Assembly (NCBI GenBank): GCA_002104945.1
Contig: MCFH01000054.1
Location: 1-64,000 of the forward strand
Direction of reading: 5' to 3'
Source: Piromyces finnis finn
Lineage: Eukaryota > Fungi > Neocallimastigomycota
Length of the DNA: 64,000 nt
Shown here: positions 6,337-47,300 of the stretch, piece after piece
How positions within the stretch are numbered: the first letter of the stretch is position 1
Layout: the number at the start of each line of letters is the position of its first letter
Position numbers and translations under genes: made by a program
Notes under the pieces: model-generated
Database searches by the model: none
What the model was told of the DNA's origin: nothing
Seen by the model: the letters and a program-made list of their open reading frames with translations, nothing else

Positions 6337-6367
<31 letters not shown>

Positions 6368-6873: not shown

Positions 6874-7335
6874 TTATCTTTGAAATATATTATTGTTAAT
6901 AGTGACAATTTTTTCATAAAATTCGTTCTCCTCCTCAGTAAAATTGGAACTATTGGTTTTATTATTATTATTATTACTATTATTATCATTACCATCAGAA
7001 ATAGTAGTGTTAACAATTAAATTCTCTTTCAAAGTTATTCTAGATAAATTAGTGGTATAATTTTCTTCTGGTTTCTTAATAATCCTACTAACAAAATAAA
7101 TAGGATGTTCAATATTATCATTATACAACCGTAGTAAAACTCCACCAATTCCATACGCACAAGCATAAGATCTAATAATAAAAGGAACATCAAATTTAGG
7201 AAAACAAAAAATAGGTGCATTAATTAAACAATATATCATATTTCTGAAACTTTGTTCTTGGATTTTTGTCCATTCATATTTAACTTTCTTCTTTAATAAT
7301 TTGAAAAGAGGAGCTGCAATAACAGAATAATTATA
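6874..7335 (-). mobile_element. Ty3/gypsy LTR-retrotransposon pol fragment (RT connection / RNase H)
   Basis: Reads NYSVIAAPLFKLLKKKVKYEWTKIQEQSF...LINAPIFCFPKFDVPFIIRSYACAYGIGGVL...EHPIYFVSRIIKKPEENY, a typical RT_RNaseH motif set. The catalytic D of xDASxxGIG is lost and no LTRs were seen. Confidence 0.85.
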
Positions 7336-8239: not shown

Positions 8240-8590
8240 TTAGAATGTATTTGCCTTGACATATACGAAATTGAATTGAAAATTGATAATTATAGTCTTT
8301 TTCATGTTTTCAGTTTCTTTATTGAATAGGTGGATTATGCTTGATAATATCATTCATGATTTCTCTTTCAATTTCCGTACTTAATAGGAAAAGGAGAAAC
8401 ATCGTGTAAGCTTAAATTTTAATCAATTCAGATAAATCGCCTGAAAGATTAGCAGCTTTAATAGCTGCTTCACATGCTATTACTTCATCAGGATAACTAA
8501 TAGTTTTTTTTTTTTTTTTAATTATTTTTCCATCAATATAGATGATAAAATTAATTATTGAATTTTAGGAATTCATTTTATTACTATTAG
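8240..8590 (-). pseudogene. Degenerate Hsp70 relic directly downstream of acyltransferase copy B
   Basis: Reads YPDEVIACEAAIKAANLSGDLSELI, and near 8250 SIQFRICQG, which matches the Hsp70 substrate-binding-domain [11 protein letters not shown]. Confidence 0.8.
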
Positions 8591-8691
8591 ATTTGTCCAA
8601 ATTAATGTATGCTTATATTATAAATTGATATATTAGGTTGTTTTTTTTTTTTTTTTTGTTATTGTTGGTGGTTTTATTGTTAATAAACAAT

Positions 8692-9975
8692 TCACATAAT
8701 ATATTTATTTAATAATGGTATTTTTGAAAGGATAAAAGCAGTACTAAAACTAATAATAGTGATAAGTATACAGAAGATCGGACATCCTATAATTAGTGGA
8801 TAACTTATTCCAAGAAATTCATGTGAACTAATATGAAGGAATTTTGTAAGTAAATTTCTAACAATCATATGTAATAAATAAACACCAAAAGTTAATCCGG
8901 AAAGTTTATTAATAATTTTGGTGGCTGTGACGGTGAATTTAATTTGTCCAACTTCATGTTTAAAGAAAATGAATAAAATAATAGAATAGATGACAATAGT
9001 GATTGTACAGTTATCTCTAAAATCTTTAGAATAACCTTTTTTATTAAATTCAACATAAATAGTAGATATACATATAAAAATGATATTAATGATTCCAAAT
9101 AAATAAAGAGCAAATCGAATGATTTTAGATTTTATGTTGACATATTTTACAATGTGATAACCAGCAACAAAGTAGCCTACAAATTCAAGGGTAAAATTGA
9201 AATGCCAGCGACCAACCCAAGTATTTAATATATTTTTGTATTCATCCATTTTTAAAATGGTGAAAATATTATTCAATGCTGGAATAAAAGAAGCCCAGAA
9301 AAAGCAAAGGCCCAAAAAATATCTAGATAAAACAATATTATCAGAGAATAAGCGTAGGAAAGGTGAAATCATATAACAACCTATAATCATGAGAATGAAC
9401 CATAAATATTCTTCACCCATAATTAAGAGTCCCCAGAAATCATGTAGTGTTTTATCTTTAAAAACGAAAATTTTTAAAATGGCATTTATAAAGGACCAAA
9501 ATATGAAGGCTGTAGCTAAGCGAAAAATATTTTGACGAAATAACTTTTTAAAAGTAAAATTTTTCGATGGATCTAAAATGAAGGTACCAGAGAGTAGCAC
9601 AAATAATGGAACACCGAAACGACAAATGCAATTATATATACATACAATAATCCAAGATTTATTATTTATTTTTCTTAAATTCTTTTCTTCTGTATAACTT
9701 GCACAATGTAAGAATATGATTGCTACTGTTGATATTATACGTGCACAATCTGCCCAGTAAAGACGTTTATTTCTTTTGGAAAGTTCATTTTTATTATTTT
9801 CATTATTATTATTTATTAGAGATTTTATTTCATCTATTGAATCATCGTCCATAACATAATTATTATCATTAATATTTATTCTCATTTCTTCCTCACTATC
9901 ATTATTATAGGTATATGAATCATTATCATGAAATGTTTTTTCTTTTTTATTTGAAGCTGTATTAAGTTGTGTCAT
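8692..9975 (-). CDS. Acyltransferase family 3 (WecH/YiaH-like membrane O-acyltransferase), intact and intronless, 427 aa
   Basis: Motifs RLYWADCARIISTVAIIFLH, RFGVPLFVLLSG, YLWFILMIIGCYMISPFL, GYFVAGY and TFGVYLLH. About 10 hydrophobic segments follow an Asn/Asp-rich N-terminal extension. Confidence 0.88.
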   Translation of the reverse strand: MTQLNTASNKKEKTFHDNDSYTYNNDSEEEMRININDNNYVMDDDSIDEIKSLINNNNENNKNELSKRNKRLYWADCARIISTVAIIFLHCASYTEEKNLRKINNKSWIIVCIYNCICRFGVPLFVLLSGTFILDPSKNFTFKKLFRQNIFRLATAFIFWSFINAILKIFVFKDKTLHDFWGLLIMGEEYLWFILMIIGCYMISPFLRLFSDNIVLSRYFLGLCFFWASFIPALNNIFTILKMDEYKNILNTWVGRWHFNFTLEFVGYFVAGYHIVKYVNIKSKIIRFALYLFGIINIIFICISTIYVEFNKKGYSKDFRDNCTITIVIYSIILFIFFKHEVGQIKFTVTATKIINKLSGLTFGVYLLHMIVRNLLTKFLHISSHEFLGISYPLIIGCPIFCILITIISFSTAFILSKIPLLNKYIM

Positions 9976-9996
9976 TTTCTTTTTTTAATTTCACAA

Positions 9997-10162
<166 letters not shown>

Positions 10163-10554
10163 TGAAAAAATATATATATTTTTACAAAAATATAAATTAA
10201 ATTCTTTTGTTTAAACTTTTTATTTCTATTATTATTATTATTTTGATAAAGCTTTCGCTTTAATATTATTTATAAAATCTACAATTTAAATCCTAAAATG
10301 AGTAGTATATAAGTTTATAAGAATAGAAGTTGATATAAATTTACCTTACAATTTAGTTTCATTGCTAATTTATAAGGTAATTTTACAATAGTAGAAACTA
10401 TTTATTTTATTATATTTACATGTAATAGAGAAAAAAAATAAAAAAATAAAGATTATATATTAAATAGATGTTAAGTCATGTGACATAAATATGTGGCTTT
10501 TTAATTAATTAATGTGATTAAAATAGACATATATTTAACTACTAAATAAATAAA

Positions 10555-10640
10555 TACTTGGCAATATCTGCTACCGAGGCTGAGTTTTTATGTACAATCA
10601 ACACAAAAATTTTTGTGAAACATTTTTAATGAAAAAATAA
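10555..10640 (+). mobile_element. Possible Ty1/copia RNase H relic
   Basis: A locally GC-richer patch reads LAISATEAEF, resembling the copia VAxSTxEAEY motif. Very short. Confidence 0.35.
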
Positions 10641-11659
10641 CAATTAAAAAAATTGCATATATTAAATAATCTAAATAATTAATAAGATTTTAGTTTAATA
10701 TTCATCATTATATATTTTTTTTAATAATTATAGTTTGAATAGTTATTACCTATATACAAATAATATAAATTAATTACCGTTTGGTTGTTACACCTAATAC
10801 TTTATTATATATATAACAAAACATATATAACAAAACTAAGAATATTCCATCATGATTGTATATGATTGTATGATTGTAGCTATCATTAGATTTTTTATAT
10901 TACCTTTTTATTACCTTTTTATTTTGAAAAAACTATATAAAAAGATAAAAAGTTTGCAAATGCTTATTATCATTACTATTAATATGATAAGTACATTTAA
11001 TACTATAAAATAAAAGTAACATTTTTATTAATTTAAAAAAAAAAAAAAAATTTAATATTATATTAGTAAATATGAAAAGAAAACTAGAACTATTACATAT
11101 ATTCATATATTAATAATTATTGAAGGTATCATCAATAATAATGCTTAACTTAATAACATTATTACTATTATTAATAATATAAATATTATTTTAATTACAA
11201 AAGTATTTTTATTAAAATTTGCTATTAAAATACTTTTTTTTCTTTATTTTTATATCTATTATAAAATTATTATATAATATTTTAGATAATATTTTAGTAT
11301 TATATATAATACTATATTATTCATATTATTATTTCTTATTATTATTTTATAATATATAAAATAGTTGTTATTTTGAAATTACAGTTTTTACTATAATATA
11401 TTAGATTATTATTAATTATTTTTTTTTTTTATTTTTTATATAATTCGACTACTTCCTTTAATGTTGAAACACAGATAATACTTTATACACAGCTTTATAT
11501 AAAATAATATTTAAACATATATAATAAACTTTTTTTTTTGATTTTTCTAATAATAAATAGTATTTTCTATTATTTAAAAGTTATTTTCATTGTATTTTTT
11601 TTTAAATATATATAATACTATTACTTTCATATCATTACACGTATTTATACTTTTTATAT

Positions 11660-13947: not shown

Positions 13948-15795
13948 TTATAATTTTTTAATTGAATTATCATACAACTGTTTTAAATGGTATTGCTTTT
14001 CTTTATATTCTTCTTTACTAGCATTTTGATTATCCTTAATCCACTCGATTGTGTAATTTATAGCTTCATTTAACACCTTACATGAATAATCATTATTTTC
14101 ACTTTTAACATATTTTTGAAGATCACTGGCATATTTTTCAAGACAATTCATACAATTTCTTCTTTCATTTTCTTGTTTTTCATCTTCTTTAAATTTTTCA
14201 GAATTCTTTATTATATATTGAATTTCATTTTCATGCAAAACTCTCTTTTTATTTTCAATTATAATAATGTTTTTGTTTTTATCATATTTAATATTATCAT
14301 ATTCTATTGAAATATTTAGAATTCCATTTTTATCAATATTAAAATTAATTATTTCCTTATCTTTTTTTTTAAACAATTCTTTGAGTTTTCTCCACATATT
14401 AGATGGAGGTGTGTTTTTGAATAAATCATATTCATATAATATATTACTTCCTTCTAATAAATTATTATCTTCATAGATGTTAAATGTAGATTTTCCATTA
14501 TTAGAAATAGTATATTTTATTATTTTTTGTATTGGAATTACGGAATTACATTTAAAAGAAATATCCCTAATTTTATCATCATTTATAAATTTAGTTTCAA
14601 TTTTTAATGAATGAGTTAATACATCTTTTACAATAATATTTTTAATTTTTCCTGAAAGGATAGAAGCTCTAATTATTGCACCATTAGCAACAGCTTCCTC
14701 TACATTTACGGTTTTATTTATATTCTTTCCATTAAAATAAGAAGTAATCATTTTCTGAATTTTTGGAATCCGTGTAGTACCACCAACTAAGATAATTTCA
14801 TTAATATCTGATTTATTAAATTCTGCATCTTTTATAACCATTTTAATAGATTTCATAATTTTTTCAAATAAATCAGAACTTAATTTTTCAAAATGCGAAC
14901 GTGTAATACTACTAGAAAAATCAATATCATTATATAAATAGTCAATATCGATAAAAGCTTCTTTAAATGATGTAAGTTCAAGTTTAATTTTTTCACATTC
15001 TTTCCTTAGGCGGTATAATGATTTTGGTTTAGTAGTAAGATCCTTATTGTACTTCTCTTTAAATTCTTTAACAAAATGGTCTACAAGACGAGTATTAAAA
15101 TCTTCCCCTCCTAAACATGAATCACCTTTTGATGCTTTAACAGTAATGTTATTATTCTTAATATTAATAATTGATACATCAAAAGTACCACTCCCAATAT
15201 CAACGATTAAAACATTTTCTTCATTTTTAATATCATTATTAATAATATAAGAAAGAGCTGCAGCAGTTGGTTCATTAATAAGTTGTATATCATCTAAACA
15301 TGCAATTTTACTAGCACTAATAATTGCTTGACGTTGAACATCATTAAAATAAGCAGGAACTGTAATAACTGCATTTTTTACAGGCTGACATAAATGTTTT
15401 TCTGCTATTTCTTTCATTTTTGATATAGTCATACTCATGATCTCTTCAATTAGAAATTCTCTAGTTTGGTTTTTATATTTGACACTTATATAAGGTTTAT
15501 TTTGCTTATTTCCCAATTTAAGTGGAAAATTTTTTTGATAAGAACGAACTTCTTTATCATTATAATCTCTACCAATTAAACGTTTACTATTTATTATTGT
15601 ATTTTCATAATTCTTTATTAATTGAGAAATGGCATTATCCCCAACTAAACGCTCGAAATCTGTAAAAGAAACACAATTTCTTGTTTGGCGTTTTCCTAGT
15701 TCATTTGGAATAATTTCTACATGATTTTTTTCCCAAATGCCAACTCTTGAATAGTTGGTACCTAGATCAATACCAATTACAGGACCTATAACCAT
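13948..15795 (-). CDS. Divergent Hsp70-family protein, intact and intronless, 615 aa
   Basis: Motifs [43 protein letters not shown] and LVGGTTRIP. The substrate-binding domain is strongly diverged and there is no EEVD. Confidence 0.9.
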   Translation of the reverse strand: MVIGPVIGIDLGTNYSRVGIWEKNHVEIIPNELGKRQTRNCVSFTDFERLVGDNAISQLIKNYENTIINSKRLIGRDYNDKEVRSYQKNFPLKLGNKQNKPYISVKYKNQTREFLIEEIMSMTISKMKEIAEKHLCQPVKNAVITVPAYFNDVQRQAIISASKIACLDDIQLINEPTAAALSYIINNDIKNEENVLIVDIGSGTFDVSIINIKNNNITVKASKGDSCLGGEDFNTRLVDHFVKEFKEKYNKDLTTKPKSLYRLRKECEKIKLELTSFKEAFIDIDYLYNDIDFSSSITRSHFEKLSSDLFEKIMKSIKMVIKDAEFNKSDINEIILVGGTTRIPKIQKMITSYFNGKNINKTVNVEEAVANGAIIRASILSGKIKNIIVKDVLTHSLKIETKFINDDKIRDISFKCNSVIPIQKIIKYTISNNGKSTFNIYEDNNLLEGSNILYEYDLFKNTPPSNMWRKLKELFKKKDKEIINFNIDKNGILNISIEYDNIKYDKNKNIIIIENKKRVLHENEIQYIIKNSEKFKEDEKQENERRNCMNCLEKYASDLQKYVKSENNDYSCKVLNEAINYTIEWIKDNQNASKEEYKEKQYHLKQLYDNSIKKL

Positions 15796-16537
15796 TATTT
15801 ATAAACTTTCTTTTTTAATTAAACGTAAGAATAAAATGATAATACTACTAGTCAAAATATTTAAATAAATATAAATTATATATATTTTTTATTTCAAACT
15901 ATTCCTTTTTATTATTATTATTATTATTTTATTTTTGATAAAATACCTTTTTATATTTATTTATTTTTTTTTTTTAAAATTTTGAGATTTCTTATTATTT
16001 TTGATAAATAACACAAAATTTTGTTTGTGTAACAATTAAAAAATAGTTTTTTTTTTTTTTTTTTTTTTAATTAATTTCTTAAAAACTATATTGGTTTTTA
16101 AATGACTGTTTTTTTTTTTTTTAAATATAAAAAAATGGTCATTTTATTATATTGGTTTTTACATTTCTCTATCCCTACATATGAATATATGAATACAACG
16201 TAGTACCTAATCCCAATCCTATTAGTCAATTTAAAATTAAATTATTTATTTATTATTAATAAATAAATACTTTAAAGACATACAAAATATATAATGTAAT
16301 TAATGAATAATTATTGAACTAAAAGTGTTTTTCGATTATAAGTTTTTATTATTATTATTAGTAGTAGTAGTAGTAGTGGTATAATAAATAAAAGAAAAAA
16401 TAATAAAATAGACTAAATACTATAATTTTACAAAAACAACATATTAAAAGAATGTCCGATAGTTATTTTATATAATAGTTTATAAAATGGGAAAACCATT
16501 TATATATGATATATATGATACATTAAGGTATTTGATA

Positions 16538-18331
16538 TTATTTAAAAAGAGAAGAAGCAAGATTTAATAATTCATTTCTTTTTTCATCATATTCTTCTTT
16601 ACTTGCATCATGATGATCGGAAATCCATTCAATTGTGGTAGTAATAATATTTCTTAATTTTTCTTCATCCTCTATTTTAATTTTGTATCTATCCTTTTCA
16701 TTATTAAGACGTTTAAGAAGTTGACGAGCATAATCATCAAGTTTATTCATAGATTGAATTCTTTCTCTGTCTTTCCTGTCTTCTTCTTGATACATTTCAG
16801 CTTCTTTAATTAAACGTTCAATCTCTTCTTGAGATAATTCATTATTTGATATGGTAATCTCTCTAGAAAGACCAGTGCCTAACTCAACAGCAGACACGTG
16901 AATAATACCATTGATATCTACTTTATAAGTTAATTCAACTTTTGTTTCATCACGTGGAGCTGATGTAATACCTTCTAATACAACTTCACCTAGGACAGTA
17001 TTATCTTTTACTAATTCACGTTCACCTTGTACAACTCTAAATCTTATGACTGTTTGTCCATCACGACATGTTATACGAATATCCTTACCTTCTGCTGGAA
17101 TACGGGTATTACGTTTAATGAGAGTATCTACTGTTGTTCCTCTATTATCAACACCTAATGAAAGAGAAAGAACATCGTATAAATTTAAATTTTTAATAGA
17201 TTCTGATTGATCACCAGAAAGACTAGCTGCTTGAATAGCTGCACCACAGACTACCGCTTCATCTGGATTAATACTTCTTCTTATTTTTCTCTCATGAAAA
17301 TAGGAGGAAACTAATTCTTTAACCATTGGTATACGAGAAGATCCACCAACTAATACAACTTCATTAATATCAGATTTGGTTAAATTAGCTTCTTCGATTG
17401 CCTTTTCTATTAGAGTAATGGCCTCTTCAAATTGAGCACGAGTAATACCAGTGAAGAAATCTATACCATCAAATAAATGTTCAACTTCAATAGATGCGTA
17501 AAAAGAAGATGATAGAATACATTTAGCACGTTCACAAGCTATTCTTAATCTATTTAATGATCTTAAATTAGTAGAAAGATCTTTTTCATATTTTCTTTTA
17601 AATTCTTCAACAAAATAGTCTACAATTTTATTAGTAAAATCTTTACCACCTAAGTGTGCATCACCTGCTGTAGCTTTAACTGTAAATGTAGAATTATTAA
17701 TGTTTAAAATAGAGATATCAAATGTACCACCCCCGAGATCAAAAATTAGAATATTTTCTTCACCCTTTATGGTTTTATTAAGACCGTAGGCAAGAGCAGC
17801 TGCAGTTGGTTCATTTATAATTTGTAAAACGTTTAAGCCAGCAATTCTACCGGCATCTCTAGTCGCTCGACGTTGAGTATCATTAAAATAAGCAGGAACA
17901 GTAATGACAGCATCTTTTACTGGGCAACCTATATAATCTTGAGCATTATTTTTTAATTTTGAAAGAATCATGGCAGATATTTCTTCTGGCATAAAATCCT
18001 TAATTTCATTTTTATATTCAACACGAATGTAAGGTTTTCCACTCTTCTCAACAACTTTGAAAGGCCAATGTTTTAAATCTGATTAAATATTTGAAAATTC
18101 TCTTCCAATTATTCGCTTTACATCAAAAAGCGAATTTTGTGGGTATCTTTCAGATTTATATTTAGCAGGATCACCAACTAAAGTTTCATTATCCTTAATA
18201 AAAACATAAGAAGATGTAGTACGTTCCCCAAGATCATTTGGAATAATATCTACATGATCCTTATTCCATATCCCTATACATGAGTATGTAGTTCCTAAAT
18301 CAATACCAATTGCATTACTTATTTCAGTTAT
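16538..18331 (-). pseudogene. Hsp70, probably a pseudogene (start codon lost plus one nonsense codon)
   Basis: The in-frame upstream extension of ORF 16538-17992 reads [18 protein letters not shown]...[15 protein letters not shown] sits at 18331 where the paralog has ATG, and TAA is at 18083-18085. Confidence 0.82.
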
Positions 18332-19353
18332 TTTATAATTAAATTATTTGCTTTAATACTAAGTTAATGTTTCAAAGAGATATTTATATACTAATGAATA
18401 ATTAATGAATTAATTGAATGTAATAATAGAATTTTTTGATTCTTTATATATATATATATATTTTTTTTCTTACCATCATTTTATTATTATTATTATTATT
18501 AATTTTTATTTTTAATGCTTGATGTCTATATTCCTATATATTTTATTATTTTAAAAAATACTTTCATGACTATTAAAAAAAAATAATAATATATAAAAAC
18601 TTTTTTTCGATATTTAGACATATTTTTTTTTTTTTTTGTATATTAAATTTAAAATTCTATAAAATAAAGTTATAAAAAAAATTACATTTTATCCAAAAAT
18701 ATAATAAACTTTAAAGATCAATAAAGTTTGTATATATTATTTTAATTAAGGAATATCCAATTAAAATAAAAAATCAGGCAGATTTCGGACTTGTCCAAGC
18801 TTTTATTTTTAATATTTTTCCCAGTTAAAATCAGGTCAAATTTGATAATCAAAAATATTATATTATAAAAAATGTTAGATTATTTATTTCATATGGAATA
18901 ATAAAAAGTTTTATCTATAAAAAAGAAGAAAATAGAAAAAAAACTATCTTTTTATGTATTTAAATTAATTTAGAAATAATAATTGATTTATAATGATAAT
19001 ATTATAATATGGATTAAAAAAATAAAATATGAAATATTAAGTTAAAATATGAAATAAATAATAAAAAAAAAAAAAGGGTATTTTACACAATAACTTTTTC
19101 TAATAATTAGTATAAATGTATGATTTCCATATTAATTTTTATAATAATTATTCTCTTTAAACTTTTATTAAAAAAAATAATTTTTTATTATATTTTATTA
19201 ATTTAAATAAAAAAAAAAAGGTATATACAACTTTAAAATAACTCTTTTTTTTTATTAGATATTTTTTTTACATACATTTACATACATTATTTAATTTTTA
19301 TGAATATCTTTTTTTTTTTTTAATAATTTTTTATTTATAATCTTGGCATGATA

Positions 19354-21279
19354 TTAGCATAATTTTTTAATAAATTTAGCGACTTCTTTTAATTCTTTTA
19401 TTTTATCTTCATAATCTTCTTTACTAGCATTATGATGTTCATGAATCCAATTTATCATAGAATTAACAGTTTTAATTAGCTTAATTTCATTCTCTAAATT
19501 CATTGTTGGTGTTGTTGGTGTTGTTGGTGTTGGTGGTATTGTTGGTGTTGTTGGTGGTGTTGGTGGTGTTGTTTGATATAAGTTAGGATAAAGAAAATGA
19601 TTTAATTCTGTTGTTTTAAGATAATTACGAAGATCGTATAAATAATTTTCTAGGGAATTTAAAGTTTTTATTCTTTCTTTTTTCCTTTTATCATCTTCTT
19701 TATAACTTTCTGCTTCCTTAATTAGTTTTTCAATATCCTTCTGATATAGACCTCCTTTACAATCAGAAATTGTAATTTTTTTGGAAAGCTTTGTCCCTTT
19801 TTCACTTGCGGTTATATGTAAAATACCATTTTGATCAATATCATAATTTAAATATATTTTTACTTCTCCACGCGGAGCTAGGGTAATTCCATTCAAAGAA
19901 AATTCACCTAAAGTAATATTATCCTTTACTAGAGTACGTTCACCCTGACATATTCGAAACTTCATGGAACTTTGATTATCACGATAAGTTCTACATTTAA
20001 TCGTTTTACTTGTTGGAATGGGTGAATTACGTTTTATAATTTTATGCATTATATCTCCTCTAATTCTAACACCTAATGATAATGGGATAACATCTTGTAA
20101 TTTTAAATTTTTAATGGTCTCAGAAAAATCGCCTAATAGGCACGCCGCTTGAATAGCTGCTCCACATGCAACGGCTTCATCTGGATTAACAGTTTTTCTT
20201 AATTTTTTTCCATCAAAATAAGAGGAAACCAATTTTTGAATTTTAGGAATTCGGGTGGACCCACCAACTAACACAATTTCATCAATATCCGATTTGTCTA
20301 AATCGGCGTCAGAAAGAACTCGTTCAATGGGTTCAAGTATCTTTTCAAATAAATCTGAATTTAATTCTTCAAATTGAGCACGTGTTATACTACTGTAAAA
20401 ATCTATACCATCAAATAAATATTCAATTTCAATGGAAGCATAATCAGAAAAAGATAGAATACATTTAGCACGATCACATGCTTTTCTTATACGATATAAT
20501 GATCTTGGATTAGTAGAAAGATCTTTGTCATATTTTCTTTTAAATTCTTCAACAAAATAGTCTACAAGACGATTTGTAAAGTCTTCACCTCCTAAATGAG
20601 TATCCCCTGCTGTAGCTTTAACCGTAAATATATTATTATTAATGGTTAAAAGAGAAACATCAAATGTACCTCCTCCAAGATCAACAATTAAAACATTTTC
20701 TTTACCCTTTTTGGTTTCATTAAGACTGTAGGCAAGAGCAGCTGCTGTTGGTTCATTTATAATTTGTAAAACGTTTAAGCCAGCAATTCTACCGGCATCT
20801 CTAGTCGCTCGACGTTGAGCATCATTAAAATAAGCAGGAACGGTAATAACAGCATCTTTTACTTCTTCACCTAAATAATCTTGAGCGTTATCTTTTAATT
20901 TTGTTAAAATCATACTAGATATTTCTTCTGGAGTAAATTCTTTAAATTCATTTTTATATTCAACACGAACATAAGGTTTTTCTAATTTTTCAATGACGTT
21001 AAAACTCCATAAATCAATATCCGATTGAACATCCTCATCCCAAAAATCACGACCTATTAATCGTTTAATATTATAAATTGTATTTTTATAATTAATTCCA
21101 CCTTTATATAAAGCTTCATCACCAACTAATCTTTCAGTAGGAGTAAATGCAACATAAGAAGGTGTTGTACGATGGCCTTGTTCATTAGCAATAACTTCTA
21201 CATAACCATTTCTCCAAGCAGCAATACATGAATAAGTAGTACCTAAATCAATACCAATTGAAATATTGTAACCCATCAT
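19354..21279 (-). CDS. Hsp70-family protein, intact and intronless, 641 aa, with a Pro/Thr insertion in the lid and no EEVD
   Basis: Canonical ATPase motifs [37 protein letters not shown] and LVGGSTRIP. Confidence 0.95.
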   Translation of the reverse strand: MMGYNISIGIDLGTTYSCIAAWRNGYVEVIANEQGHRTTPSYVAFTPTERLVGDEALYKGGINYKNTIYNIKRLIGRDFWDEDVQSDIDLWSFNVIEKLEKPYVRVEYKNEFKEFTPEEISSMILTKLKDNAQDYLGEEVKDAVITVPAYFNDAQRRATRDAGRIAGLNVLQIINEPTAAALAYSLNETKKGKENVLIVDLGGGTFDVSLLTINNNIFTVKATAGDTHLGGEDFTNRLVDYFVEEFKRKYDKDLSTNPRSLYRIRKACDRAKCILSFSDYASIEIEYLFDGIDFYSSITRAQFEELNSDLFEKILEPIERVLSDADLDKSDIDEIVLVGGSTRIPKIQKLVSSYFDGKKLRKTVNPDEAVACGAAIQAACLLGDFSETIKNLKLQDVIPLSLGVRIRGDIMHKIIKRNSPIPTSKTIKCRTYRDNQSSMKFRICQGERTLVKDNITLGEFSLNGITLAPRGEVKIYLNYDIDQNGILHITASEKGTKLSKKITISDCKGGLYQKDIEKLIKEAESYKEDDKRKKERIKTLNSLENYLYDLRNYLKTTELNHFLYPNLYQTTPPTPPTTPTIPPTPTTPTTPTMNLENEIKLIKTVNSMINWIHEHHNASKEDYEDKIKELKEVAKFIKKLC

Positions 21280-38084: not shown

Positions 38085-41000
38085 TTATGGACAATCAATT
38101 AAATCTTTATATTCTTTTAATATTTGCTTAAATGGAATTTCATTTAATTGGTTTTTAATTTCAGAAGGTGGTTTTTTTGAAATATGTTCACTAAAGATAT
38201 TATTTGAAATATTATTACTACTACCACTACTACTATTAGTACTATTATCACTACATACAATAATACCAGGATAATTTAATTCTTCAATATTTAAATTTAT
38301 ATTTCCCATTGAGAAAATATATCCTGGATATTCAACCCCTTCGAAATATATCGTTTTCATTTCATATCCTTTAAATATGGTTTCTGTTTTTGTATGTATT
38401 TCATAATGGGAAGTATCTACCCATTCTTTTTGACCAATAACATGTCCAATTCTTCCTTTCCATTGATAATACCCACTTTTAATCCATTCTTTTGTTTCAA
38501 TAATTTGATCTTCATGAATAGGCTTTTCTAAATCAACCGTTTGGAATTCTTGTCTTTCTTTTACATAATTATTATAAATCATTCGACTAACAATCTCTAC
38601 TTCTCTTTCACCATAAATTAATCCATAGATATTTCTAATGAATTCTCCTTGGATTTTAATCTGCCCTTTACCAATTATTATTCCAAAGGTATTATCAAAT
38701 GTACAACTTTTAATAGTGATGTCTTTATGAATTGAAATAATAATACCACACTTTTCTAATTCTGATATATAAATGTCTTTATGAATTTCTCTCTTCTCAT
38801 TTTTAATAACTTTAGTTTCATTGTTAAAAGTGTTATATTCAATTGTTTCTGAAACATTTTTTTCAATTGTTCCACCTCCTCCATTCTTAAATGAACCATC
38901 AACTTCAACTATAATATTACCTCCAGATTGAATTCTTCCACTATTATTATCAAATGAGGTTGTTTTCATTATTGTTTCATCTTGTGTAGATATACTCTTT
39001 TCATTATAAAACTTTCTTGTTTCTAATTTGAATTTCTTTAAACTGACATTATACTTTCCTTCATAATTCAAAATATTTAAATAGAGATTTATATTATTCC
39101 AACATAGATCTGAATTAAACTTTACTATATCCTGGGATGATGCTATTGATAAATATCCATTTTTATCTATTATTTTTGGTTCAAATGTATTATTAATATA
39201 TATTATTTGATTTCCACTAATGAAAAAGTAAATTCCTTTATCGGCGACAAATTTTCCTAATGTACTAATCACTCCTTCAAATCTACCATTATATGGAACA
39301 CTTTCGGTTTGTTTATTTTCACTATATTTTATTTCAAATGTTTTACCAACAAGTATATGAATATGTTGGGTTGAACGAAATATTCCTTCATTTTTAAACT
39401 CCTTCATTACTGAAATATTACCACTGTAAATATTAATTGATGAATTCTTTGTTCCATAATAATTACTCAAAATATCTATGCATTCCTCTGGAGGTGTTTT
39501 TATATTAATGATTCCATCATTATATAAACCTATTTGGTTTTGATAAACATCTTTTAATCCTTTTCCTTTGATCATATCTTCTTCTGTAACATATCTTCCT
39601 TTTATACTTAATTTTCTAAATATACTAAATTCAGCATTATATCCATTAATAATAGATAACAATTCTAATATACATTCTCTACATTCTATCCTTCCTTCAT
39701 TGCAAATATTTGTAATATTTTGAACATTGACATTTTCATTTATAATGCATTCAGAACCCGAAGAAACTTGAAGATATCTTAAATTTTCTAAATTAACATT
39801 TGACATAATGCTTAATTTTGAATTATTATCTATAATAATTTCATTGACCTTAGGCAATGTTGAGCCTGAAAGTAAAACTAATTTGCAATTTAATGAAATT
39901 CTAGTTAGTTTTTCTGAAGTGATTTTCATTTCAATATTGCCTTGTAAATTATTGAGCTGATCCATTTTGTCACTTAATCTAACATCACCATTAATTTTAA
40001 GGAGGGCATTTTCCAAATTTTCTATTTTCTCTAATTTCGAAATGTCAGAATGGATTGTAGTGCTTCCTTCATTATAAATATGTTTTATACTTGAAACACA
40101 ACTATTTTCAATTATATTTAATTTTCCTGATTCTTTAACTGTTAATTTATCAAATACAATAATTCCTCCTTTAATTGTAACTTTAGATTTACAAACAATT
40201 TCTTCGGTAGATATTCCAAATGATTTATTATTTTGATAATTTTCTATTAGTGTTTCGTTTAAAAATTCTAATTTATTATCGTAATTTATAGGATTAGAAT
40301 TATCATGTATTTCTTCATTTTCAATGTCATCAATTTTAACATTTCCTTCAAATACTCCATGTTTCCCGTGAACAACACCTTTTAAAATACTCTCCTTTGC
40401 TTTAATTTCAGTACAATTTGCTATAATTTTCCCACCATTATGTTCAAACATTTTTCCTTGAATAATAATACTTCCTAAATTTCCATTAATGAATCCATTA
40501 TTCTCTGCCTTTTCTTTTATATTCAATTCAAATGATTCGGAAGTTGAAATGGTATTATTATTAAGGAAATATAAACATGTTGAAAAAATTAAATTATCTA
40601 ATTTAATATTACCATAATTAATGAAATTCGAACATGTTATGAAATTTAAATTTTTTAAATTAATATCACCATTATTATTAAATTTATTGGTTTCAAGAGA
40701 TAATTTATCGGCAAAATTAATACTTCCATCATCATCATTGTATATATATTCTATTTGATTCAATGATATACTATCTGATGTAAATTGAGTATCCCCATTA
40801 TTTAATATATAGCCATGATCTGAAATTAGATTTCCTGAAATTGTCAATTTTCCATTGTTTATAAGAAATGCTTTATTTAAAGTTAAATTATGGATAAATA
40901 AATTGTGCTTTTTATTATCAATAAATATACCGCTTACATTTTTTTCGCTTTCATTATTAATTGTTTCTTCAAAAATAAAATTACTCACATTACTTTGAAT

Positions 41001-41489
41001 TTCATTCCTTGTATCATAATTGACAAAAAATATTAAATTTGCTTTTATTTTCAATGTTTTTACATTGATTTTATTGTTAATGAAAAGATTACGACATTGT
41101 ATTTCTAAATAATCTAAATTATTAATTTCCTCATTAATAATAATATCACAATATTCAGTTATTAACATATTTCTGACTATCTCTGTATTATATATATGGA
41201 AGGTATTGCTTGTTTGGTCGCCAATATTAAATGTATTATTATCCAATTCAGCGTTTTTTAAGCTTTCATCAAATAAATTATTAATTTCATTATATTCAAT
41301 ATAACTAGTATGGGGAGAAAATTCAGACACGAAATAATCATTAACATCATAGTATATTTTATTAATAAGTTTTTTCAATTTTATGTGGACTCCATGTTTA
41401 GCACTATCAGTAGATTTATTCAATAGATTTTGTTCTTCAACGGATATAATATATCCTTTCATTTCATCTTTTTGACTTTCTTCTAACAT
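38085..41489 (-). CDS. Intronless 1134-aa Asn/Ile/Gly-rich beta-helix protein, filamentous-haemagglutinin/CdiA-like
   Basis: Repeated ~20-aa motifs such as LINNGKLTISGNL, FINYGNIKLDNL, FDNNSGRIQSGGNIIVEVDGSFKN, FDNTFGIIIGKGQIKIQGEFIRNIYGLI and PGYIFSMGNINLNIEELNYPGII. The family assignment rests on pattern recognition only. Confidence 0.6.
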   Translation of the reverse strand: MLEESQKDEMKGYIISVEEQNLLNKSTDSAKHGVHIKLKKLINKIYYDVNDYFVSEFSPHTSYIEYNEINNLFDESLKNAELDNNTFNIGDQTSNTFHIYNTEIVRNMLITEYCDIIINEEINNLDYLEIQCRNLFINNKINVKTLKIKANLIFFVNYDTRNEIQSNVSNFIFEETINNESEKNVSGIFIDNKKHNLFIHNLTLNKAFLINNGKLTISGNLISDHGYILNNGDTQFTSDSISLNQIEYIYNDDDGSINFADKLSLETNKFNNNGDINLKNLNFITCSNFINYGNIKLDNLIFSTCLYFLNNNTISTSESFELNIKEKAENNGFINGNLGSIIIQGKMFEHNGGKIIANCTEIKAKESILKGVVHGKHGVFEGNVKIDDIENEEIHDNSNPINYDNKLEFLNETLIENYQNNKSFGISTEEIVCKSKVTIKGGIIVFDKLTVKESGKLNIIENSCVSSIKHIYNEGSTTIHSDISKLEKIENLENALLKINGDVRLSDKMDQLNNLQGNIEMKITSEKLTRISLNCKLVLLSGSTLPKVNEIIIDNNSKLSIMSNVNLENLRYLQVSSGSECIINENVNVQNITNICNEGRIECRECILELLSIINGYNAEFSIFRKLSIKGRYVTEEDMIKGKGLKDVYQNQIGLYNDGIINIKTPPEECIDILSNYYGTKNSSINIYSGNISVMKEFKNEGIFRSTQHIHILVGKTFEIKYSENKQTESVPYNGRFEGVISTLGKFVADKGIYFFISGNQIIYINNTFEPKIIDKNGYLSIASSQDIVKFNSDLCWNNINLYLNILNYEGKYNVSLKKFKLETRKFYNEKSISTQDETIMKTTSFDNNSGRIQSGGNIIVEVDGSFKNGGGGTIEKNVSETIEYNTFNNETKVIKNEKREIHKDIYISELEKCGIIISIHKDITIKSCTFDNTFGIIIGKGQIKIQGEFIRNIYGLIYGEREVEIVSRMIYNNYVKERQEFQTVDLEKPIHEDQIIETKEWIKSGYYQWKGRIGHVIGQKEWVDTSHYEIHTKTETIFKGYEMKTIYFEGVEYPGYIFSMGNINLNIEELNYPGIIVCSDNSTNSSSGSSNNISNNIFSEHISKKPPSEIKNQLNEIPFKQILKEYKDLIDCP

Positions 41490-42179: not shown

Positions 42180-43488
42180 TCAATCAATTAAATCTTTATA
42201 TTATTTTAATATTTGCTTAAATGGAATTTCATTTAATTGGTTTTTAATTTCAGAAGGTGGTTTTTTTGAAATATGTTCACTAAAGATATTATTTGAAATA
42301 TTATTACTACTACCACTACTACTATTAGTACTATTATCACTACATACAATAATACCAGGATAATTTAATTCTTCAATATTTAAATTTATATTTCCCATTG
42401 AGAAAATATATCCTGGATATTCAACCCCTTCGAAATATATCGTTTTCATTTCATATCCTTTAAATATGGTTTCTGTTTTTGTATGTATTTCATAATGGGA
42501 AGTATCTACCCATTCTTTTTGACCAATAACATGTCCAATTCTTCCTTTCCATTGATAATACCCACTTTTAATCCATTCTTTTGTTTCAATAATTTGATCT
42601 TCATGAATAGGCTTTTCTAAATCAACCGTTTGGAATTCTTGTCTTTCTTTTACATAATTATTATAGAACATTCGACTAACAGTATCTACTTCTCTTTCAC
42701 CATAAATTAATCCATAGATATTTCTAATGAATTCTCCTTGGATTTTAATCTGCCCTTTACCAATTATTATTCCAAAGGTATTATCAAATGTACAACTTTT
42801 AATAGTGATGTCTTTATGAATTGAAATAATAATACCACACTTTTCTAATTCTGATATATAAATGTCTTTATGAATTTCTCTCTTCTCATTTTTAATAACT
42901 TTAGTTTCATTGTTAAAAGTGTTATATTCAATTGTTTCTGAAACATTTTTTTCAATTGTTCCACCTCCTCCATTCTTAAATGAACCATCAACTTCAACTA
43001 TAATATTACCTCCAGATTGAATTCTTCCACTATTATTATCAAATGAGGTTGTTTTCATTATTGTTTCATCTTGTGTAGATATACTCTTTTCATTATAAAA
43101 CTTTCTTGTTTCTAATTTGAATTTCTTTAAACTGACATTATACTTTCCTTCATAATTCAAAATATTTAAATAGAGATTTATATTATTCCAACATAGATCT
43201 GAATTAAACTTTACTATATCCTGGGATGATGCTATTGATAAATATCCATTTTTATCTATTATTTTTGGTTCAAATGTATTATTAATATATATTATTTGAT
43301 TTCCACTAATGAAAAAGTAAATTCCTTTATCGCAAATTTTCCTAATGTATTAATCACTCCTTCAAATCTACCATTATATGGAACACTTTCGGTTTGTTTA
43401 TTTTCACTATATTTTATTTCAAATGTTTTACCAACAAGTATATGAATATGTTGGGTTGAACGAAATATTCCTTCATTTTTAAACTCCT
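42180..43488 (-). pseudogene. Diverged partial duplicate of the 3' ~1.3 kb of the 1134-aa gene
   Basis: Matches 38093-39408, with a 4-bp deletion at ~43332, a few substitutions (EIVSRMIY versus DTVSRMFY) and a premature TAA at 42201. It has no ATG or 5' part of its own. Confidence 0.9.
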
Positions 43489-44308
43489 CTGTTCACTTAT
43501 ATGGTTTTCCTATGTTTATATAGTATCTTGTTTTACTTGACTATAATAAAAGATTTTTTTAAATGTCCTTTCTCTAAAAATAAAAATAATTTGATGTATT
43601 GTTATATAAATCAGTATTCTTTAACCTAATATATATTCTATGAGGATCAATATATTTATAGTTATATAAATCAATCACAACAAATTTAGTTTATTGAAAA
43701 GCATATTACATTTCTAATTAATTGTCAATCTTAAAAAAATAAGTAAAAAATATAAATATCCAGTTTATTATATAATATTAATAATTTTTTAAAGTGAGAT
43801 TAACTTTATTCTTTTTTTCCAACAATTAATTATCCTTTTCAATCTACAATTGATTAAAATCATTATAAATTTAATTATTTAAATATACTACATATTTCAT
43901 TTATTGATATTTAATAAAAATGCATATAATTAACTTACAATTAATTAGGATTTTGATATATAATATTAATTAATGATTATTATATTATTATATTACTAAA
44001 AACTATTTGAAATATTACTTCTTTTTAACTTTTTTTTTTTATTTATAGTTTTAAATTTTTAATTTTAAAAATTAAATTTATTTCAAGGTTTTTTATTGAT
44101 GGAAATAATTTTGTACTACTAGTTTGTAATATAATAAAATGATACATATAAAATGAAATTTAATTTTTAAACTATATTATATACTTTTTAACATTAAAAA
44201 TATTTTTTTATGTAAAACATATAAAACAATAATTTATTTATATTTATATTTATGTATCCTTTATGTTTTTTTTTATAAATTTTTTTTCAAAAAATACTAA
44301 ATTACTAC

Positions 44309-47300
44309 TTAATCTAAATTTTTATTAGTTTTTCTGAGATTTACTGCCCATGGATTAACATTTGGAGTAGATTCAGGAGAAGTTGGTGTATTTTCTTTTT
44401 CAAATATTGCATTATTATTTGTTTTACGAAGTTTACTTGTTAAAATTTGACTCATCATATCAGTTGGTTCTTCCTTTGGAGGAGATGTTGGGCTTTCAGT
44501 ATTTGATACACTAACTCTCTTCTTTAACTTTGCATTTCGAATTTGTTCCATAAGATCACCGCCACCGCTTCCAGAAGATACAGGTGTTGCTGGTGTACTT
44601 GGTTCTTCTACTGGTGTTCTCTTTTTTAATTTAGCATTACGGATTTGTTCCATAAGGTCTCCACCACCAGTAGAAACTGGTGGAGGTGGTGGAGGTGGAT
44701 TAGCTGAGGTAGCATTATCTCTCTTCTTTAATTTAGCATTACGAATTTGATCCATGAGATCACCGCCTCCTCCACCAGTAGAAATTGGTGGTGGTGGAGG
44801 TGGTGGAGCACCACCTGTTTTCATAGGTGGAGGAGGAGGTGGACCACCCATTTTCATTGGAGGAGGAGGTGGTGGTGGTGGGCCTCCTGCACCTGACATT
44901 GGAGGTGGTGGAGGAGCACTAGTCTTCATTGGAGGAGGAGGTGGTGGTGGTGGGCCTCCTGCACCTGACATTGGAGGTGGTGGAGGAGCACTAGTCTTCA
45001 TTGGAGGAGGTGGTGGTGGTGGTGGGCCTCCTGCGCCTGACATTGGAGGTGGTGGAGGAGCACTAGTCTTCATTGGAGGAGGAGGTGGTGGTGGTGGGCC
45101 TCCTGCACCTGACATTGGAGGTGGTGGAGGAGCACTAGTCTTCATTGGAGGAGGAGGTGGTGGTGGTGGGCCTCCTGCACCTGACATTGGAGGTGGTGGA
45201 GGAGCATTCATTTTTCTTACTGGAGGTAGTGGTGCATTATCTTCTTCTTGAGTTTCAGTAACAATCCTGGAACGAGCTTTTTTAATTTGATCAAAGAGGG
45301 ACTCAGTAGGAGCTGCTCTTGATGACATGGCACTTTTAAGGGGTGGTGGTGGTGGTGGACCGCCAGCTGACATTGGTGGTGGTGGCGGAGGTGGACCACC
45401 AGCTGACATTGGTGGTGGTGGTGGTGGTGGTGGTGGTGGACCACCAGCTGATATTGAAGGAGGTGGACCACCAGCTGATATTGAAGGAGGTGGAGGGGGA
45501 GCATTCATTTTTCTTACTGGTGGTGGTGGAACAGTAGTAGGAGTATTAGAGGAAGAAGTTTCATCTTCATCAGATTGAGTGACAATCTTTGAACGAGCTT
45601 TTTTAATTTGGTCAAAGAGAGATTCAGTAGGAGCTGCTCTAGATGTAGCAGTACTCTTAAGAGGAGGTGGAGGTGGAGGAGCACCAGAAGACATTGGTGG
45701 TGGTGGTGGTGGTGGGCCGCCAGATGATGCTGGTGGAGGTGGAGGAGGTGGTGGAGGACCTCCAGCAGATTTTGGTGGTGGTGGTGGTGGTGATGAGTCT
45801 TTAGGTGATGTTGATGAAAGTGGTGGAGGTGGAGGTGGAGCAGGGTTTTTCTTTATTGTTGGAATAGGAAGTGGAGGAGCAGGATTAGTTTTCTTGATAG
45901 TTGATGATAAAGGTGTTGAATTATCATTTGAATTTTGTGATACTGGATTTGGTACCATTGAAATTACAGGAGGAGGAGGAGGAGCTCTTCTTGGAGGAGG
46001 ATTAGAATTCTGTAATAAATCTTCTGGTATAGGAATATCATCATCTACATTATTACTGATATATTCTGCTAATTTATCCAATTCTTCATCATCAATATTA
46101 CTACTTTCTTCTCTTTCTTTTTCTTTTAAGCATCTTGGTACTGAAGTAGGAAGTGTAGCAAAATCAATATTATGACTTGATTTTTTATTTAAGTCTACCT
46201 TTAAAGAATCTGGTCTTTGAGGTGTTTCAACAACCTTCTTTTCTTCTTCTTGTTTTGGTGGTTCCTCAATAATCTTTTCTTCCTCTGAGTTTTGTGATTC
46301 TTCATTAAGTTTTTCTTCTTGTTGTTGCTTTGGAAGTTCCTCAATAATCTTTTCATCTTCTTGCTTTGGAGATTCTTCAACAACCTTTTCTTTTTCTGGT
46401 TCTGTTGAGGTGATATCTACAACTACAGCCTCTTCTTTTTCTTCCTCCTGTTTTGTTTTATGTTCAGTATCAGCAACTGGAGAAATAATATCATCTAAAG
46501 CATCAAGATTTTTATTCATAATAGATTTATCTATAATATAATAATAAATAATATTTAAAATATTATAAAAAGACCGGGAAAAAAAAGAGGAAAAGGGGAA
46601 TATATAAAATAGCAATACATAATTAGCATATATGTATTATATAATATAAATTTATAATATATATATAATAATTATGTAATTATGTAATTATATTAATATA
46701 TAAAAAAAAAGGATAAAATAAAATAAAATAAAATTTACCTTTTTCACCAGAAGCTTCAATATTACGTACTTTTTTAGAAGCAATCAACTCTAAAGAAATG
46801 ATTATATAAAGTATTATATTATAAATATATATATATATATTTATTAATAATAAAAGTATGTATTCAAAAAAATTTCATATATATATATGTTATTAAATAA
46901 AATTAAGTAATTTTTCTTTTTTTCTTACTTTCAATCATAATATTAGAACTGGAATATAATTTAACATTACTGATATCAACTTCCTTTTTTTGAGGGAAAT
47001 TGAACATTAAATTAATTAATTGTTTTTCTTTTGCTTTAAGTAATTCATTTAATTCAATAATTTTCTTTTTTTTATATTTATTTATATATTTATGTATGTA
47101 TGTATATTATTATTTGAATTGAAAGAAAAAAATCATGTTATTGAAAAAACCAATATTCATAAAATATCATAATTTATGAAATAATAATGATATTGTTATT
47201 GTATATGATAATTTTTAGTAAATATAAAAAATATATATAAATATAATATAAAAAGAAAATGTATATTAATTTTAACAATTAAATAATAAGTAGTGAACTT

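Follow-up and report, generated by a model that had tools for sequence, protein, structure and literature searches.

The window, the 64,000-nucleotide stretch of DNA from an anaerobic gut fungus analysed here, carries on its minus strand an intact gene for a long β-helix protein of CdiA-like type. The gene very likely belongs to a bacterial CdiA-like family and was acquired by the fungus. Taken as a whole, the data are best explained by a stalk-only, 3'-truncated paralogue of an acquired CdiA-like rod, a reading we consider probable. Whether the protein still functions as a non-toxic rod is close to an even question. Nor does the gene stand alone, since the analysis also turned up its full-length paralogue, a partial tandem copy, one homologue on a second fungus-like contig and relatives among parabasalids. 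Horizontal acquisition from a bacterium, as proposed in a preliminary description of this DNA, is supported, and none of the outcomes that the description named as refuting its reading came about.

The window gene and its β-helical product

The gene, its parts and the adjoining fragment are as follows.

38085..41489, minus strand: intact β-helix ORF, tip-less, CdiA-like/FHA-type; 1134 codons, stop included in the interval
40932..41489, minus strand: N-terminal part, residues 1-186; begins with a 12-residue leader, followed by the 'YIISVEE' start
39996..40931, minus strand: β-helix, residues 187-498; best superposition on TpsA secretion (TPS) domains and most of the LxNxGxI rungs
39273..39995, minus strand: central β-helix, residues 499-739; two-strand coils of ~22 residues
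38238..39272, minus strand: FHA-repeat-like β-helix, residues 740-1084; two long β-hairpin insertions; matches classical TpsA repeats
38874..38963, minus strand: sub-threshold Pfam Fil_haemagg match, residues 843-872; E 0.046, 14.9 bits, cut-off 21.5
38691..38753, minus strand: first hairpin and G-I-I-S rung motif, residues 913-933
38274..38330, minus strand: E-Y-P-G-Y-I-F-S rung, residues 1054-1072; best-conserved motif in the whole family
38088..38237, minus strand: tail, residues 1085-1134; Ser/Asn-rich with two short helices, in place of distal stalk, junction and tip
42181..43488, minus strand: tandem partial copy of the ORF's last 1.3 kb; equals 38092-39403, 99.24% identical

The ORF encodes 1134 amino acids from an ATG start with zero internal stops, confirming the uninterrupted 3.4-kb frame described earlier. 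The other five frames of the region hold 47-209 stops each, and 2000 shuffles of the ORF give a mean of 117 stops and a minimum of 82. The ORF had been set against multi-exon housekeeping neighbours; this contrast is not clean, since single long ORFs span almost the whole of two nearby Hsp70 genes and of a TatD gene. A promoter and terminator scan, not applicable to a eukaryote, gave the same result as shuffles. Exact-match contigs from a sequencing run that is only guessed to be RNA (X1) lie on the ORF body at 38171-40566, patchily and at a depth of 3.5-6.4, and weakly suggest that transcripts exist.

GC content by codon position is 32/26/14%. The third-position value of 14% compares with 12% in the neighbouring Hsp70 genes and 25-45% in bacterial homologues, and the overall GC of 25% is host-like, against 35-45% for the bacterial loci of the family. 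The contig that holds the ORF is 385 kb long and has Hsp70, TatD and acyltransferase genes around it; the intergenic DNA there is 15-20% GC, and EukProt includes the protein. An intronless ORF of a bacterial type of family, together with a database relative labelled as a Synergistaceae MAG, could point to bacterial contamination or mis-assembly. Against this stand the base composition, unlike that of any bacterial member, the eukaryotic genes on both sides, the absence of a signal peptide and the presence of a second copy on a 400-kb contig, and we regard such an artefact as scarcely credible.

The window gene encodes a TpsA/FHA-type right-handed β-helix, as seen from both the family profile and the AlphaFold model. 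The latter is a confident continuous helix (pLDDT 81.4) with coils along nearly the whole length. In agreement with the repeat-built protein first described, the strict [LFIV]xNxGx[ILV] motif occurs five times, whereas 0.66 occurrences are expected and none of 1000 shuffles has more than 4. Residues 1-186 are modelled as three long strands, a low-confidence helix/loop and the first helix coils; in bacterial relatives the 'YIISVEE' start comes right after the signal peptide. The two peptides quoted earlier are found at residues 913 and 1054, and their 'long inserted loops' are modelled as long β-hairpins directly before the G-I-I-S and P-G-Y-I-F-S rungs. The E-Y-P-G-Y-I-F-S pattern served to find relatives.

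The window protein passes no Pfam threshold, its best match being the Fil_haemagg segment listed above. PF05860 (TPS) has no match in this protein, its paralogues or the bacterial relatives, and aligning the family N-terminus by hhalign with 11 genuine TPS domains gives a probability of 1.3%. The reported lack of a TPS domain therefore holds by sequence. It is less clear by structure, where residues ~187-498 superpose best on TPS domains, although this superposition lacks specificity, given that the C-terminal third is matched just as well by the EtpA stalk. NPN[GL] motifs (NPNL/NPNG) are absent from the window protein, and Pfam finds no toxin domain in it. The VENN motif is missing from it and equally from the toxin-tipped relatives L017, P0014 and P0002. 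NCBIfam and PDB sequence searches with the window protein and the paralogue returned nothing useful. The N-terminal hydropathy is 0.09, compared with 1.6-2.2 in bacterial relatives, and none of the three fungal proteins has the hydrophobic N-terminus of those relatives. The absences of VENN motif, toxin tip and signal peptide noted earlier are thus borne out; an upstream exon may supply a signal peptide.

Some observations could suggest an unrelated eukaryotic solenoid, built of LRR or other repeats, that resembles FHA by composition. In the full-length Foldseek search, the highest-ranking rows, all non-significant, belong to TLR and further LRR proteins; a 22-residue period runs through the central coils; and an Asn/Ile-rich composition can give spurious repeat similarity. 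This possibility, to which we attach almost no weight, is refuted by collinear alignments with bacterial toxins. Identity as an LRR protein was rejected, as the window protein has neither a curved solenoid with convex helix/turn nor an LRR profile match.

Bacterial relatives

An exhaustive HMMER search of 1.8 billion proteins, with a profile built from the window protein and its paralogue, yields 86 hits. The profile reaches genuine TpsA proteins (E to 1e-13); those with TPS, Fil_haemagg and Fil_haemagg_2 domains score E 9e-13 to 1e-4, and their repeat regions are matched in 5-15 stretches each. Closer than these is a non-canonical bacterial family of CdiA-like haemagglutinin-repeat polymorphic toxins, so that the nearest sequence relatives are bacterial toxins and not eukaryotic LRR proteins. 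The FhaB/CdiA-type TpsA identity first proposed is retained in that the repeats reach true TpsA, and has to be qualified in that the nearest family is a divergent, non-classical branch. A word-index search with the whole window protein gave 8000 candidates, none significant, and was swamped by low-complexity words; its restriction to residues 760-1085 came back empty. Neither outcome speaks for absence, and both are superseded by the HMMER search.

Members of the bacterial family carry a Sec-type signal, an N-terminal cap and a ~2000-residue β-helical rod with a Fil_haemagg_2 region. At the distal end, a conserved NPS[LI]xEFFxMM junction precedes a variable stretch of 400-650 residues with a swappable toxin, and a CdiI or SUKH immunity gene lies downstream. 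Relatives pass the PF05594 and PF13332 thresholds. Toxin tips among the relatives include EC869-like (L017) and LHH (P0014) domains and the Ntox8 of P0002, the second fungus-like homologue. In the alphaproteobacterial locus L017, the CDI_toxin_EC869-like tip (E 3e-38) is followed by CdiI (E 4e-33). P0014 has LHH, Fil_haemagg and Fil_haemagg_2, all beyond Pfam cut-offs; both P0014 and P0092 lie in bacterial contexts with SMI1_KNR4/SUKH genes next in line. Immunity genes of this type are found downstream at L012, L016 and L018, the last of which shows arrays of orphan cassettes kept by bacterial relatives.

No TpsB (ShlB/POTRA) gene is seen beside the bacterial members examined. In profile scans for ShlB (PF03865; three bacterial genomes) and Ntox8 (PF15545; fungal genome), the controls gave no signal, which leaves both scans uninformative. 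On sequence grounds, the putative donor family is a divergent branch in which neither a VENN motif nor a Pfam TPS domain can be recognised, and not classical FhaB/CdiA. The carrier MAGs are labelled as Holosporales or other Alphaproteobacteria, Puniceicoccales and Synergistaceae. Protist symbionts are found among these lineages, and this suggests a path by which genes could flow into gut eukaryotes.

Truncation of the window copy and its fungal relatives

The window protein is colinear with residues 33-1245 of P0092. The bacterial toxins are 2521 residues long, and only the first ~45% of their architecture is matched. The protein ends ~1,200 residues short of the junction and tip, both retained by a 2840-residue paralogue, whose collinearity with P0092 extends ~1000 residues further at 37% identity. 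The junction motif is located at position 2260 in P0001, 2634 in P0002 and 2099 in P0092; the window protein has no variable C-terminal toxin of the kind that follows it. Its tail (residues 1085-1134) is unrelated to the paralogue sequence. Apart from the paralogue, no distal-stalk homology is found near the ORF or in the rest of the genome, and no immunity gene is present near the ORF or the paralogue. Among the roles suggested in the preliminary description, the truncated toxin carrier is the one that the data back. Exhaustive profile and further searches found no orthologue of the truncated form in any other organism.

The adjoining fragment at 42181-43488 differs from the ORF by six mismatches and a 4-base length difference and contains in-frame stops; judging from these features, it is a recent pseudogene fragment. 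It differs at only six sites, and the paralogues are saturated.

The paralogue is intact and lies on another contig of the same genome, next to genes for ankyrin-repeat and FG-like proteins. It shares 31-35% identity with the window protein. Its tip belongs to no recognisable toxin family, with no Pfam match and no usable hit in an Atlas search with residues 2480-2840. A homologue of 3283 residues keeps an Ntox8 tip; its contig (run SRR8491975) is called fungus-like on the sole basis of base composition, with 24.7% GC in the gene and 9.5% in the flanks. The two fungal proteins, whose C-terminal halves BLASTP failed to align with composition adjustment, show 36% identity over 2609 residues without it. 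Trichomonas and Histomonas also have relatives. A metagenome scan with fungal patterns recovered only a bacterial homologue of 61-67% GC and no further fungal copies.

In the tree, the fungal proteins form a clade with support of 100/100, a grouping to which the N/I/K-rich composition they have in common, flagged by the tree tool, may have contributed. They are 28-36% identical to each other and 24-31% identical to bacterial proteins, roughly the same distance in both cases, and the window protein is 28-31% identical to its nearest relatives. At 1.71, its end branch is three times as long as the branches to the full-length fungal proteins (0.52-0.53), and the family-conserved 10-residue FCLxIPGxG motif is gone from its N-terminus, leaving a 10-residue gap relative to the paralogue. 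No donor can be named because the backbone of the tree lacks resolution.

Origin, function and comparison with known systems

In the explanation that we favour, the fungal lineage would have gained a gene of this family from bacteria, after which host codon usage would have been adopted and the signal peptide lost. The family would now consist of the 2840-residue paralogue, the Ntox8-tipped homologue and the window gene as a 3'-truncated paralogue, in which the cap is kept together with ~1070 proximal rod residues, followed by an unrelated 50-residue tail. The product is probably a stalk-only β-helix present at low level, either cytoplasmic or exported by a non-classical route. With no signal peptide, junction or toxin, it is unable to act as a toxin-delivery filament; a retained role could be that of a scaffold, of a rod that binds or adheres, or of the full-length paralogue's partner or decoy.

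A retained role at the protein level is favoured because the frame has stayed open through ~70% residue divergence, where random frames stop every 5-25 codons. The longer branch and the lost motif favour relaxed constraint. They are also compatible with a non-functional relic, in which a rearrangement removed the distal stalk and tip and the ORF is drifting, still open because truncation or loss of constraint is recent. The missing signal, junction and tip, the low and patchy read support, the lack of an orthologue of the truncated form and the locus instability implied by the adjoining 99%-identical frameshifted fragment fit this alternative. The stop-free frame, set against its stop-rich alternatives and shuffles, does not. 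Nor do the invariant positions, which despite the low identity to the nearest relatives are the N/G/I/L/F rungs, or the helix that AlphaFold still models with confidence. The open frame, the kept rung positions and the modelled helix make long neutral drift at 75-80% A+T unlikely, and we judge a relic to be a serious contender with somewhat the lower chance.

The stalk-only protein could instead work in trans in a toxin system, pairing with the paralogue so as to co-assemble with it, to serve as chaperone or decoy, or to provide a substrate for recombination that varies the stalk. The intact paralogue in the same genome and the orphan cassette arrays at L018 are consistent with this proposal, as is the ability of β-helix rods to stack end to end. 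However, the two genes lie on different contigs and at their level of identity are too divergent for homologous recombination, and the paralogue tip shows no recognisable toxin family. We consider an in-trans function quite improbable.

The bacterial relatives resemble CdiA (e.g. E. coli EC869, EC93) in their FHA-type filament, Fil_haemagg_2 region, constant-to-variable junction, interchangeable toxin and adjoining immunity gene, and one of them combines an EC869-like DNase tip with CdiI. They differ from it in lacking Pfam TPS, NPNL/NPNGI and VENN, in their NPS[LI]xEFFxMM junction and in having no TpsB gene beside the members examined. The window protein departs further, lacking the signal peptide, everything past the proximal rod, the toxin and an immunity neighbour, although its best structural matches are TpsA proteins. 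The N-terminal similarity to HxuA (4rt6, 4i84), HMW1 (2odl), EtpA (8cpk, 8vba) and FhaB lies below Pfam and hhalign detection. Those proteins are secreted by TpsB in diderm bacteria, whereas the window protein is encoded by a eukaryote and has no export signal.

Bacterial polymorphic-toxin domains are known to have moved into eukaryotes, and Ntox8 is already listed in dictyostelids (Zhang et al. 2012, PMC3482391). An Rhs/haemagglutinin-like toxin on an unplaced coral scaffold is doubtful and may be a mis-assembly (PMC9111745). The present case shares with these the occurrence of polymorphic-toxin material in eukaryotic genomes. It differs in that the earlier transfers are small toxin/immunity domains or a doubtful scaffold, while here a filament of up to 2840-3283 residues lies on well-assembled contigs with host codon usage. 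The literature searched contains no report of the filament itself being kept in a eukaryotic genome, and by that literature retention of such a giant delivery filament is new relative to the small-domain transfers known before. The analysis also defines, among bacterial FHA-repeat toxins, a divergent branch without recognisable TPS, VENN or adjacent TpsB.

The eukaryotic hosts of this filament have no two-partner secretion machinery, which raises the question of how the rod is used and exported in a fungus or trichomonad. A bolder reading, which we put forward as a rather unlikely one, is that anaerobic gut eukaryotes (anaerobic fungi, Trichomonas, Histomonas) captured whole CdiA-like filaments, apparently on at least two occasions, from bacteria of symbiont type. 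They would have kept them under selection for long, using them to attack or recognise bacteria or conspecifics and exporting them without signal peptide or TpsB; the window gene would then have been reduced to the stalk and have taken up a new role (such as decoy, adhesin or self-protection). The window gene alone, as a truncated and fast-evolving member of the set, is of more modest significance. Across the set, frames of 1134, 2840 and 3283 codons are open and codon usage has fully converged on that of the extremely AT-rich host, which argues for selection on the protein.

The open reading frame and its neighbourhood

The preliminary description reported a long uninterrupted frame at this locus, and this observation is confirmed.

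38085-41489, minus strand: single ATG-start ORF of 1134 codons

The frame runs for 1134 codons without a stop, whereas shuffling of the coding strand (2000 mononucleotide shuffles) gives a mean of 117 stops and at least 82, and the other five frames over the same 3.4 kb contain 47-209. The surrounding G+C content is 20-25%. Codon usage is host-like, with a G+C of 32/26/14% at codon positions 1/2/3, in line with the GC3 of the neighbouring Hsp70 genes (12%) and TatD gene (19%). The protein has a letter-for-letter match in NCBI, UniRef and EukProt, and the contig extends over 385,862 bases. The strict rung pattern [LFIV]xNxGx[ILV] is observed five times against 0.66 expected, and the two peptides quoted earlier as inserted-loop repeats are found at residues 913 and 1054.

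The neighbouring genes encode three Hsp70 proteins, TatD, two Acyl_transf_3 proteins and one proline-rich PH/WH2 protein. Several of these are single long ORFs too, so that the contrast drawn previously with multi-exon neighbours is soft, while the uninterrupted nature of the ORF itself stands. The three Hsp70-family ORFs (615, 484 and 641 aa) lie in tandem at 13948-21279 on the minus strand. Furthermore, a sharp 42% G+C island at 44001-46000, within surroundings of about 20%, coincides with a 768-aa ORF (44309-46615, minus strand) with a weak WH2 match.

TpsA-like fold and a closer bacterial toxin family

The sole Pfam match of the window protein is to Fil_haemagg (residues 843-872; E 0.046, sub-threshold). 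No match was obtained against NCBIfam or PDB sequences, and a language-model look-up returned haemagglutinin-repeat clusters alone, at lead-level scores. For profile searches, the protein was combined with P0001, a full-length paralogue from the same genome (G000).

C181:74661-83183 (L009:462-8984), plus strand: intronless, stop-free paralogue P0001, 2840 codons

Searching 1.84 billion representative proteins with this profile yielded 86 matches in three sets. One set consists of classical TpsA proteins of 3-5 kaa from Salinicola, Pseudomonas, Brachymonas and Photorhabdus (E 9e-13 to 1e-4), whose repeat regions match profile columns ~890-1080 over and over along their length; the two that were scanned with Pfam contain TPS, Fil_haemagg and Fil_haemagg_2. 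Another set is a bacterial family with far stronger matches (E 1e-145 to 1e-20), colinear with the whole window protein (residues 33-1245 of the 2521 of P0092 align); at the N-terminus of its members, a conserved 'PEYVVNIE' segment comes after a Sec-like signal. Its named carriers are metagenome-assembled genomes labelled Holosporales, Alphaproteobacteria, Puniceicoccales (two) and Synergistaceae. The remaining set is made up of eukaryotic members, taken up below.

This closer family represents a CdiA-type polymorphic toxin/immunity system. P0014, encoded near DNA polymerase III, DsbB and IF-1, matches Fil_haemagg, Fil_haemagg_2 and the LHH nuclease toxin, each above its Pfam threshold, and an SMI1_KNR4 gene overlaps its end. 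An SMI1_KNR4/SUKH gene also follows P0092. The toxin of the alphaproteobacterial locus L017 ends in a CDI_toxin_EC869-like tip (E 3e-38), and CdiI is encoded by the gene after it (E 4e-33). At L018 (Puniceicoccales), the toxin gene is followed by a SUKH gene and by repeated ORFs that resemble cassettes. The pairing of toxin tip with downstream immunity gene (CdiI, SUKH) is shared with CdiA; in contrast to CdiA, the family is divergent: neither a TPS domain nor a VENN motif is recognisable, and no TpsB gene was seen beside the bacterial members examined.

Several further features were observed at these loci. The short ORFs at L018:13429-19443, downstream of the 2367-aa toxin gene, resemble a series of orphan tip cassettes, several of them having a repeated segment in common; they are interleaved with the SUKH immunity gene, as is typical of polymorphic toxin loci. 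The L017 family member (3852-10955) is split by one in-frame stop between 7217 and 7221 but still has the EC869-like tip and CdiI; the stop may stem from faulty sequencing, mark a pseudogene or be read through. Directly upstream, a 615-aa ORF without Pfam match (L017:840-2684) is a possible non-TpsB export partner of the family. A shared WVDxSxYE block in a 2356-aa ORF (L020:370-7440), on a 1.46-Mb metagenome contig of 61-67% G+C, extends the family to high-GC bacteria.

AlphaFold2 modelling of the window protein with a 42-row family alignment gave a mean pLDDT of 81.4 and a pTM of 0.61, with short strands arranged in coils making up nearly the whole model and a long hairpin ahead of each of the two rungs singled out previously. 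Residues 740-1134 modelled separately reached a pLDDT of 88.7 and a pTM of 0.81. Foldseek found no significant match for the full or the C-terminal model. The top five structure matches of the C-terminal model are all TpsA proteins (4i84, 19.4; 2odl, 19.3; the EtpA secretion domain 8cpk, 19.2; 4rt6, 19.1; EtpA stalk 604-895, 18.8), and the sixth drops to 14.4. The models thus predict right-handed beta-helix geometry of the TpsA type throughout the rod, as proposed from the repeats. The match of the N-terminal part is no proof of a TPS domain, since the EtpA stalk segment matches as well as the secretion domains do. In agreement with the earlier reading, hhalign detects no TPS domain in the family N-terminus at profile level (probability 1.3%), and NPNL/NPNGI motifs are absent.

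Eukaryotic members and their origin

P0001 is 31-35% identical to the window protein and colinear with its residues 12-1084. Of the two genes, it is arguably the one of greater interest. It begins with a low-complexity extension of ~190 residues lacking a signal peptide, keeps the complete stalk and junction, and ends in a tip of ~570 residues with no recognisable domain and a tandem ~58-residue duplication close to the end. Further eukaryotic or eukaryote-like members were located as follows.

L011:115-9966, Logan contig of run SRR8491975: P0002, 3283 aa
L015:10001-16411, Trichomonas vaginalis G3: chromosomal member, 2136 aa

The gene for P0002 has 24.7% G+C and its flanks 9.5%, so its source looks like another anaerobic fungus. 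Its C-terminus is a complete Ntox8 domain (E 4e-19) matching the full Pfam profile, with the HxxxH motif kept; a strict HxR is not seen. The middle of its rod is duplicated internally. The Trichomonas gene lies on a 34.7-Mb chromosome among eIF2-alpha, subtilase and eIF4E; a second member in this species has 606 aa, and one in Histomonas meleagridis has 1263 aa, with Fil_haemagg_2 at 42 bits. The parabasalid members (L015:10001-16411; proteins P0069 and P0035) lie in eukaryotic chromosomal context.

A maximum-likelihood tree, built under LG+C20+F+G4 from 1748 columns and covering 19 long members, unites the three fungal sequences with support of 100/100, a grouping that the deviant composition flagged for the fungal rows could inflate. 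Within this clade the window protein branches as the sister of P0001 plus P0002 (95/92), with an end branch of 1.71 against 0.52-0.53 for these two. Common descent of P0001 and P0002 is independently indicated by their common signal-less N-terminal extension, through which they align from residues 4 and 6. Histomonas and Trichomonas, the latter on a very long branch, fall outside the fungal clade, and the backbone is a polytomy in which no donor can be named. The closest family is bacterial, as the preliminary description had anticipated. Because the family is widespread among bacteria, where signal peptides and immunity genes come with it, and occurs patchily among eukaryotes, we infer transfer from bacteria to eukaryotes.

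Surveys of horizontal transfer in anaerobic or early-diverging fungi and a 2025 study of lateral transfer in Trichomonas are silent on genes for haemagglutinins or adhesins, and literature searches under the Pfam names of these domains found no eukaryotic report. Among the eukaryotic occurrences recorded in a 2012 census of polymorphic toxins are toxin and immunity domains but not the filament (PMC3482391), and a 2022 Rickettsia study notes one doubtful coral scaffold (PMC9111745). What emerges is a divergent CdiA-like family whose filament genes have become established in anaerobic eukaryotes, with the window gene as its truncated member.

Truncation and present state of the window gene

Beyond the end of the window protein, P0001 and bacterial P0092 remain colinear for ~1000 residues at 37% identity, through the Fil_haemagg_2 region up to a junction motif, NPS[LI]xEFFxMM (position 2260 in P0001, 2634 in P0002, 2099 in P0092), past which the sequences diverge. 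The window protein departs from the alignment right after E-Y-P-G-Y-I-F-S (residue 1054), the most conserved rung of the family, and ends in a Ser/Asn-rich, helical tail of 50 residues with no counterpart. It also misses the conserved 10-residue motif FCLxIPGxG. Neither distal-stalk homology nor the P0001 N-terminal extension was found around the ORF or, the paralogue apart, anywhere else in the genome. In a hydropathy scan, the three fungal proteins show no N-terminal hydrophobic segment (best 15-mer 0.09-0.43 versus 1.6-2.2 in bacterial members). The protein is truncated and has no signal peptide, junction, toxin or immunity neighbour, which bears out its original description as signal-less and tip-less and, of the options offered there, favours the truncated toxin carrier.

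42181-43488, upstream of the ORF: recent tandem fragment repeating 38092-39403, 99.24% identical

The fragment differs from the ORF by 4 bases in length and carries in-frame stops. It already contains the novel tail, so the truncation predates the duplication.

Four exact Logan contigs of run X1, whose type is presumed, cover 38171-39286, 39273-39744, 39752-40127 and 40167-40566, although sequence below 39404 could come from the tandem fragment instead. Their depth is 3.5-6.4, and other contigs of these runs reach near 1000; the AT-rich flanks yield low-complexity read-contig fragments only. These data are compatible with low-level transcription but do not prove it.

As a stalk-only rod, the protein would be unable to act as a delivery filament. 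Several features speak for relaxed constraint, namely the length of the branch, the loss of a conserved motif, the weakness of the read support and the instability of the locus, and the gene may be a relic, a reading to which we give roughly one chance in three. Against it, the frame has stayed open across ~70% residue divergence and rung residues are retained, which argues for past selection on the protein and probably for present selection. We put the chance that it still functions as a non-toxic rod at about even.
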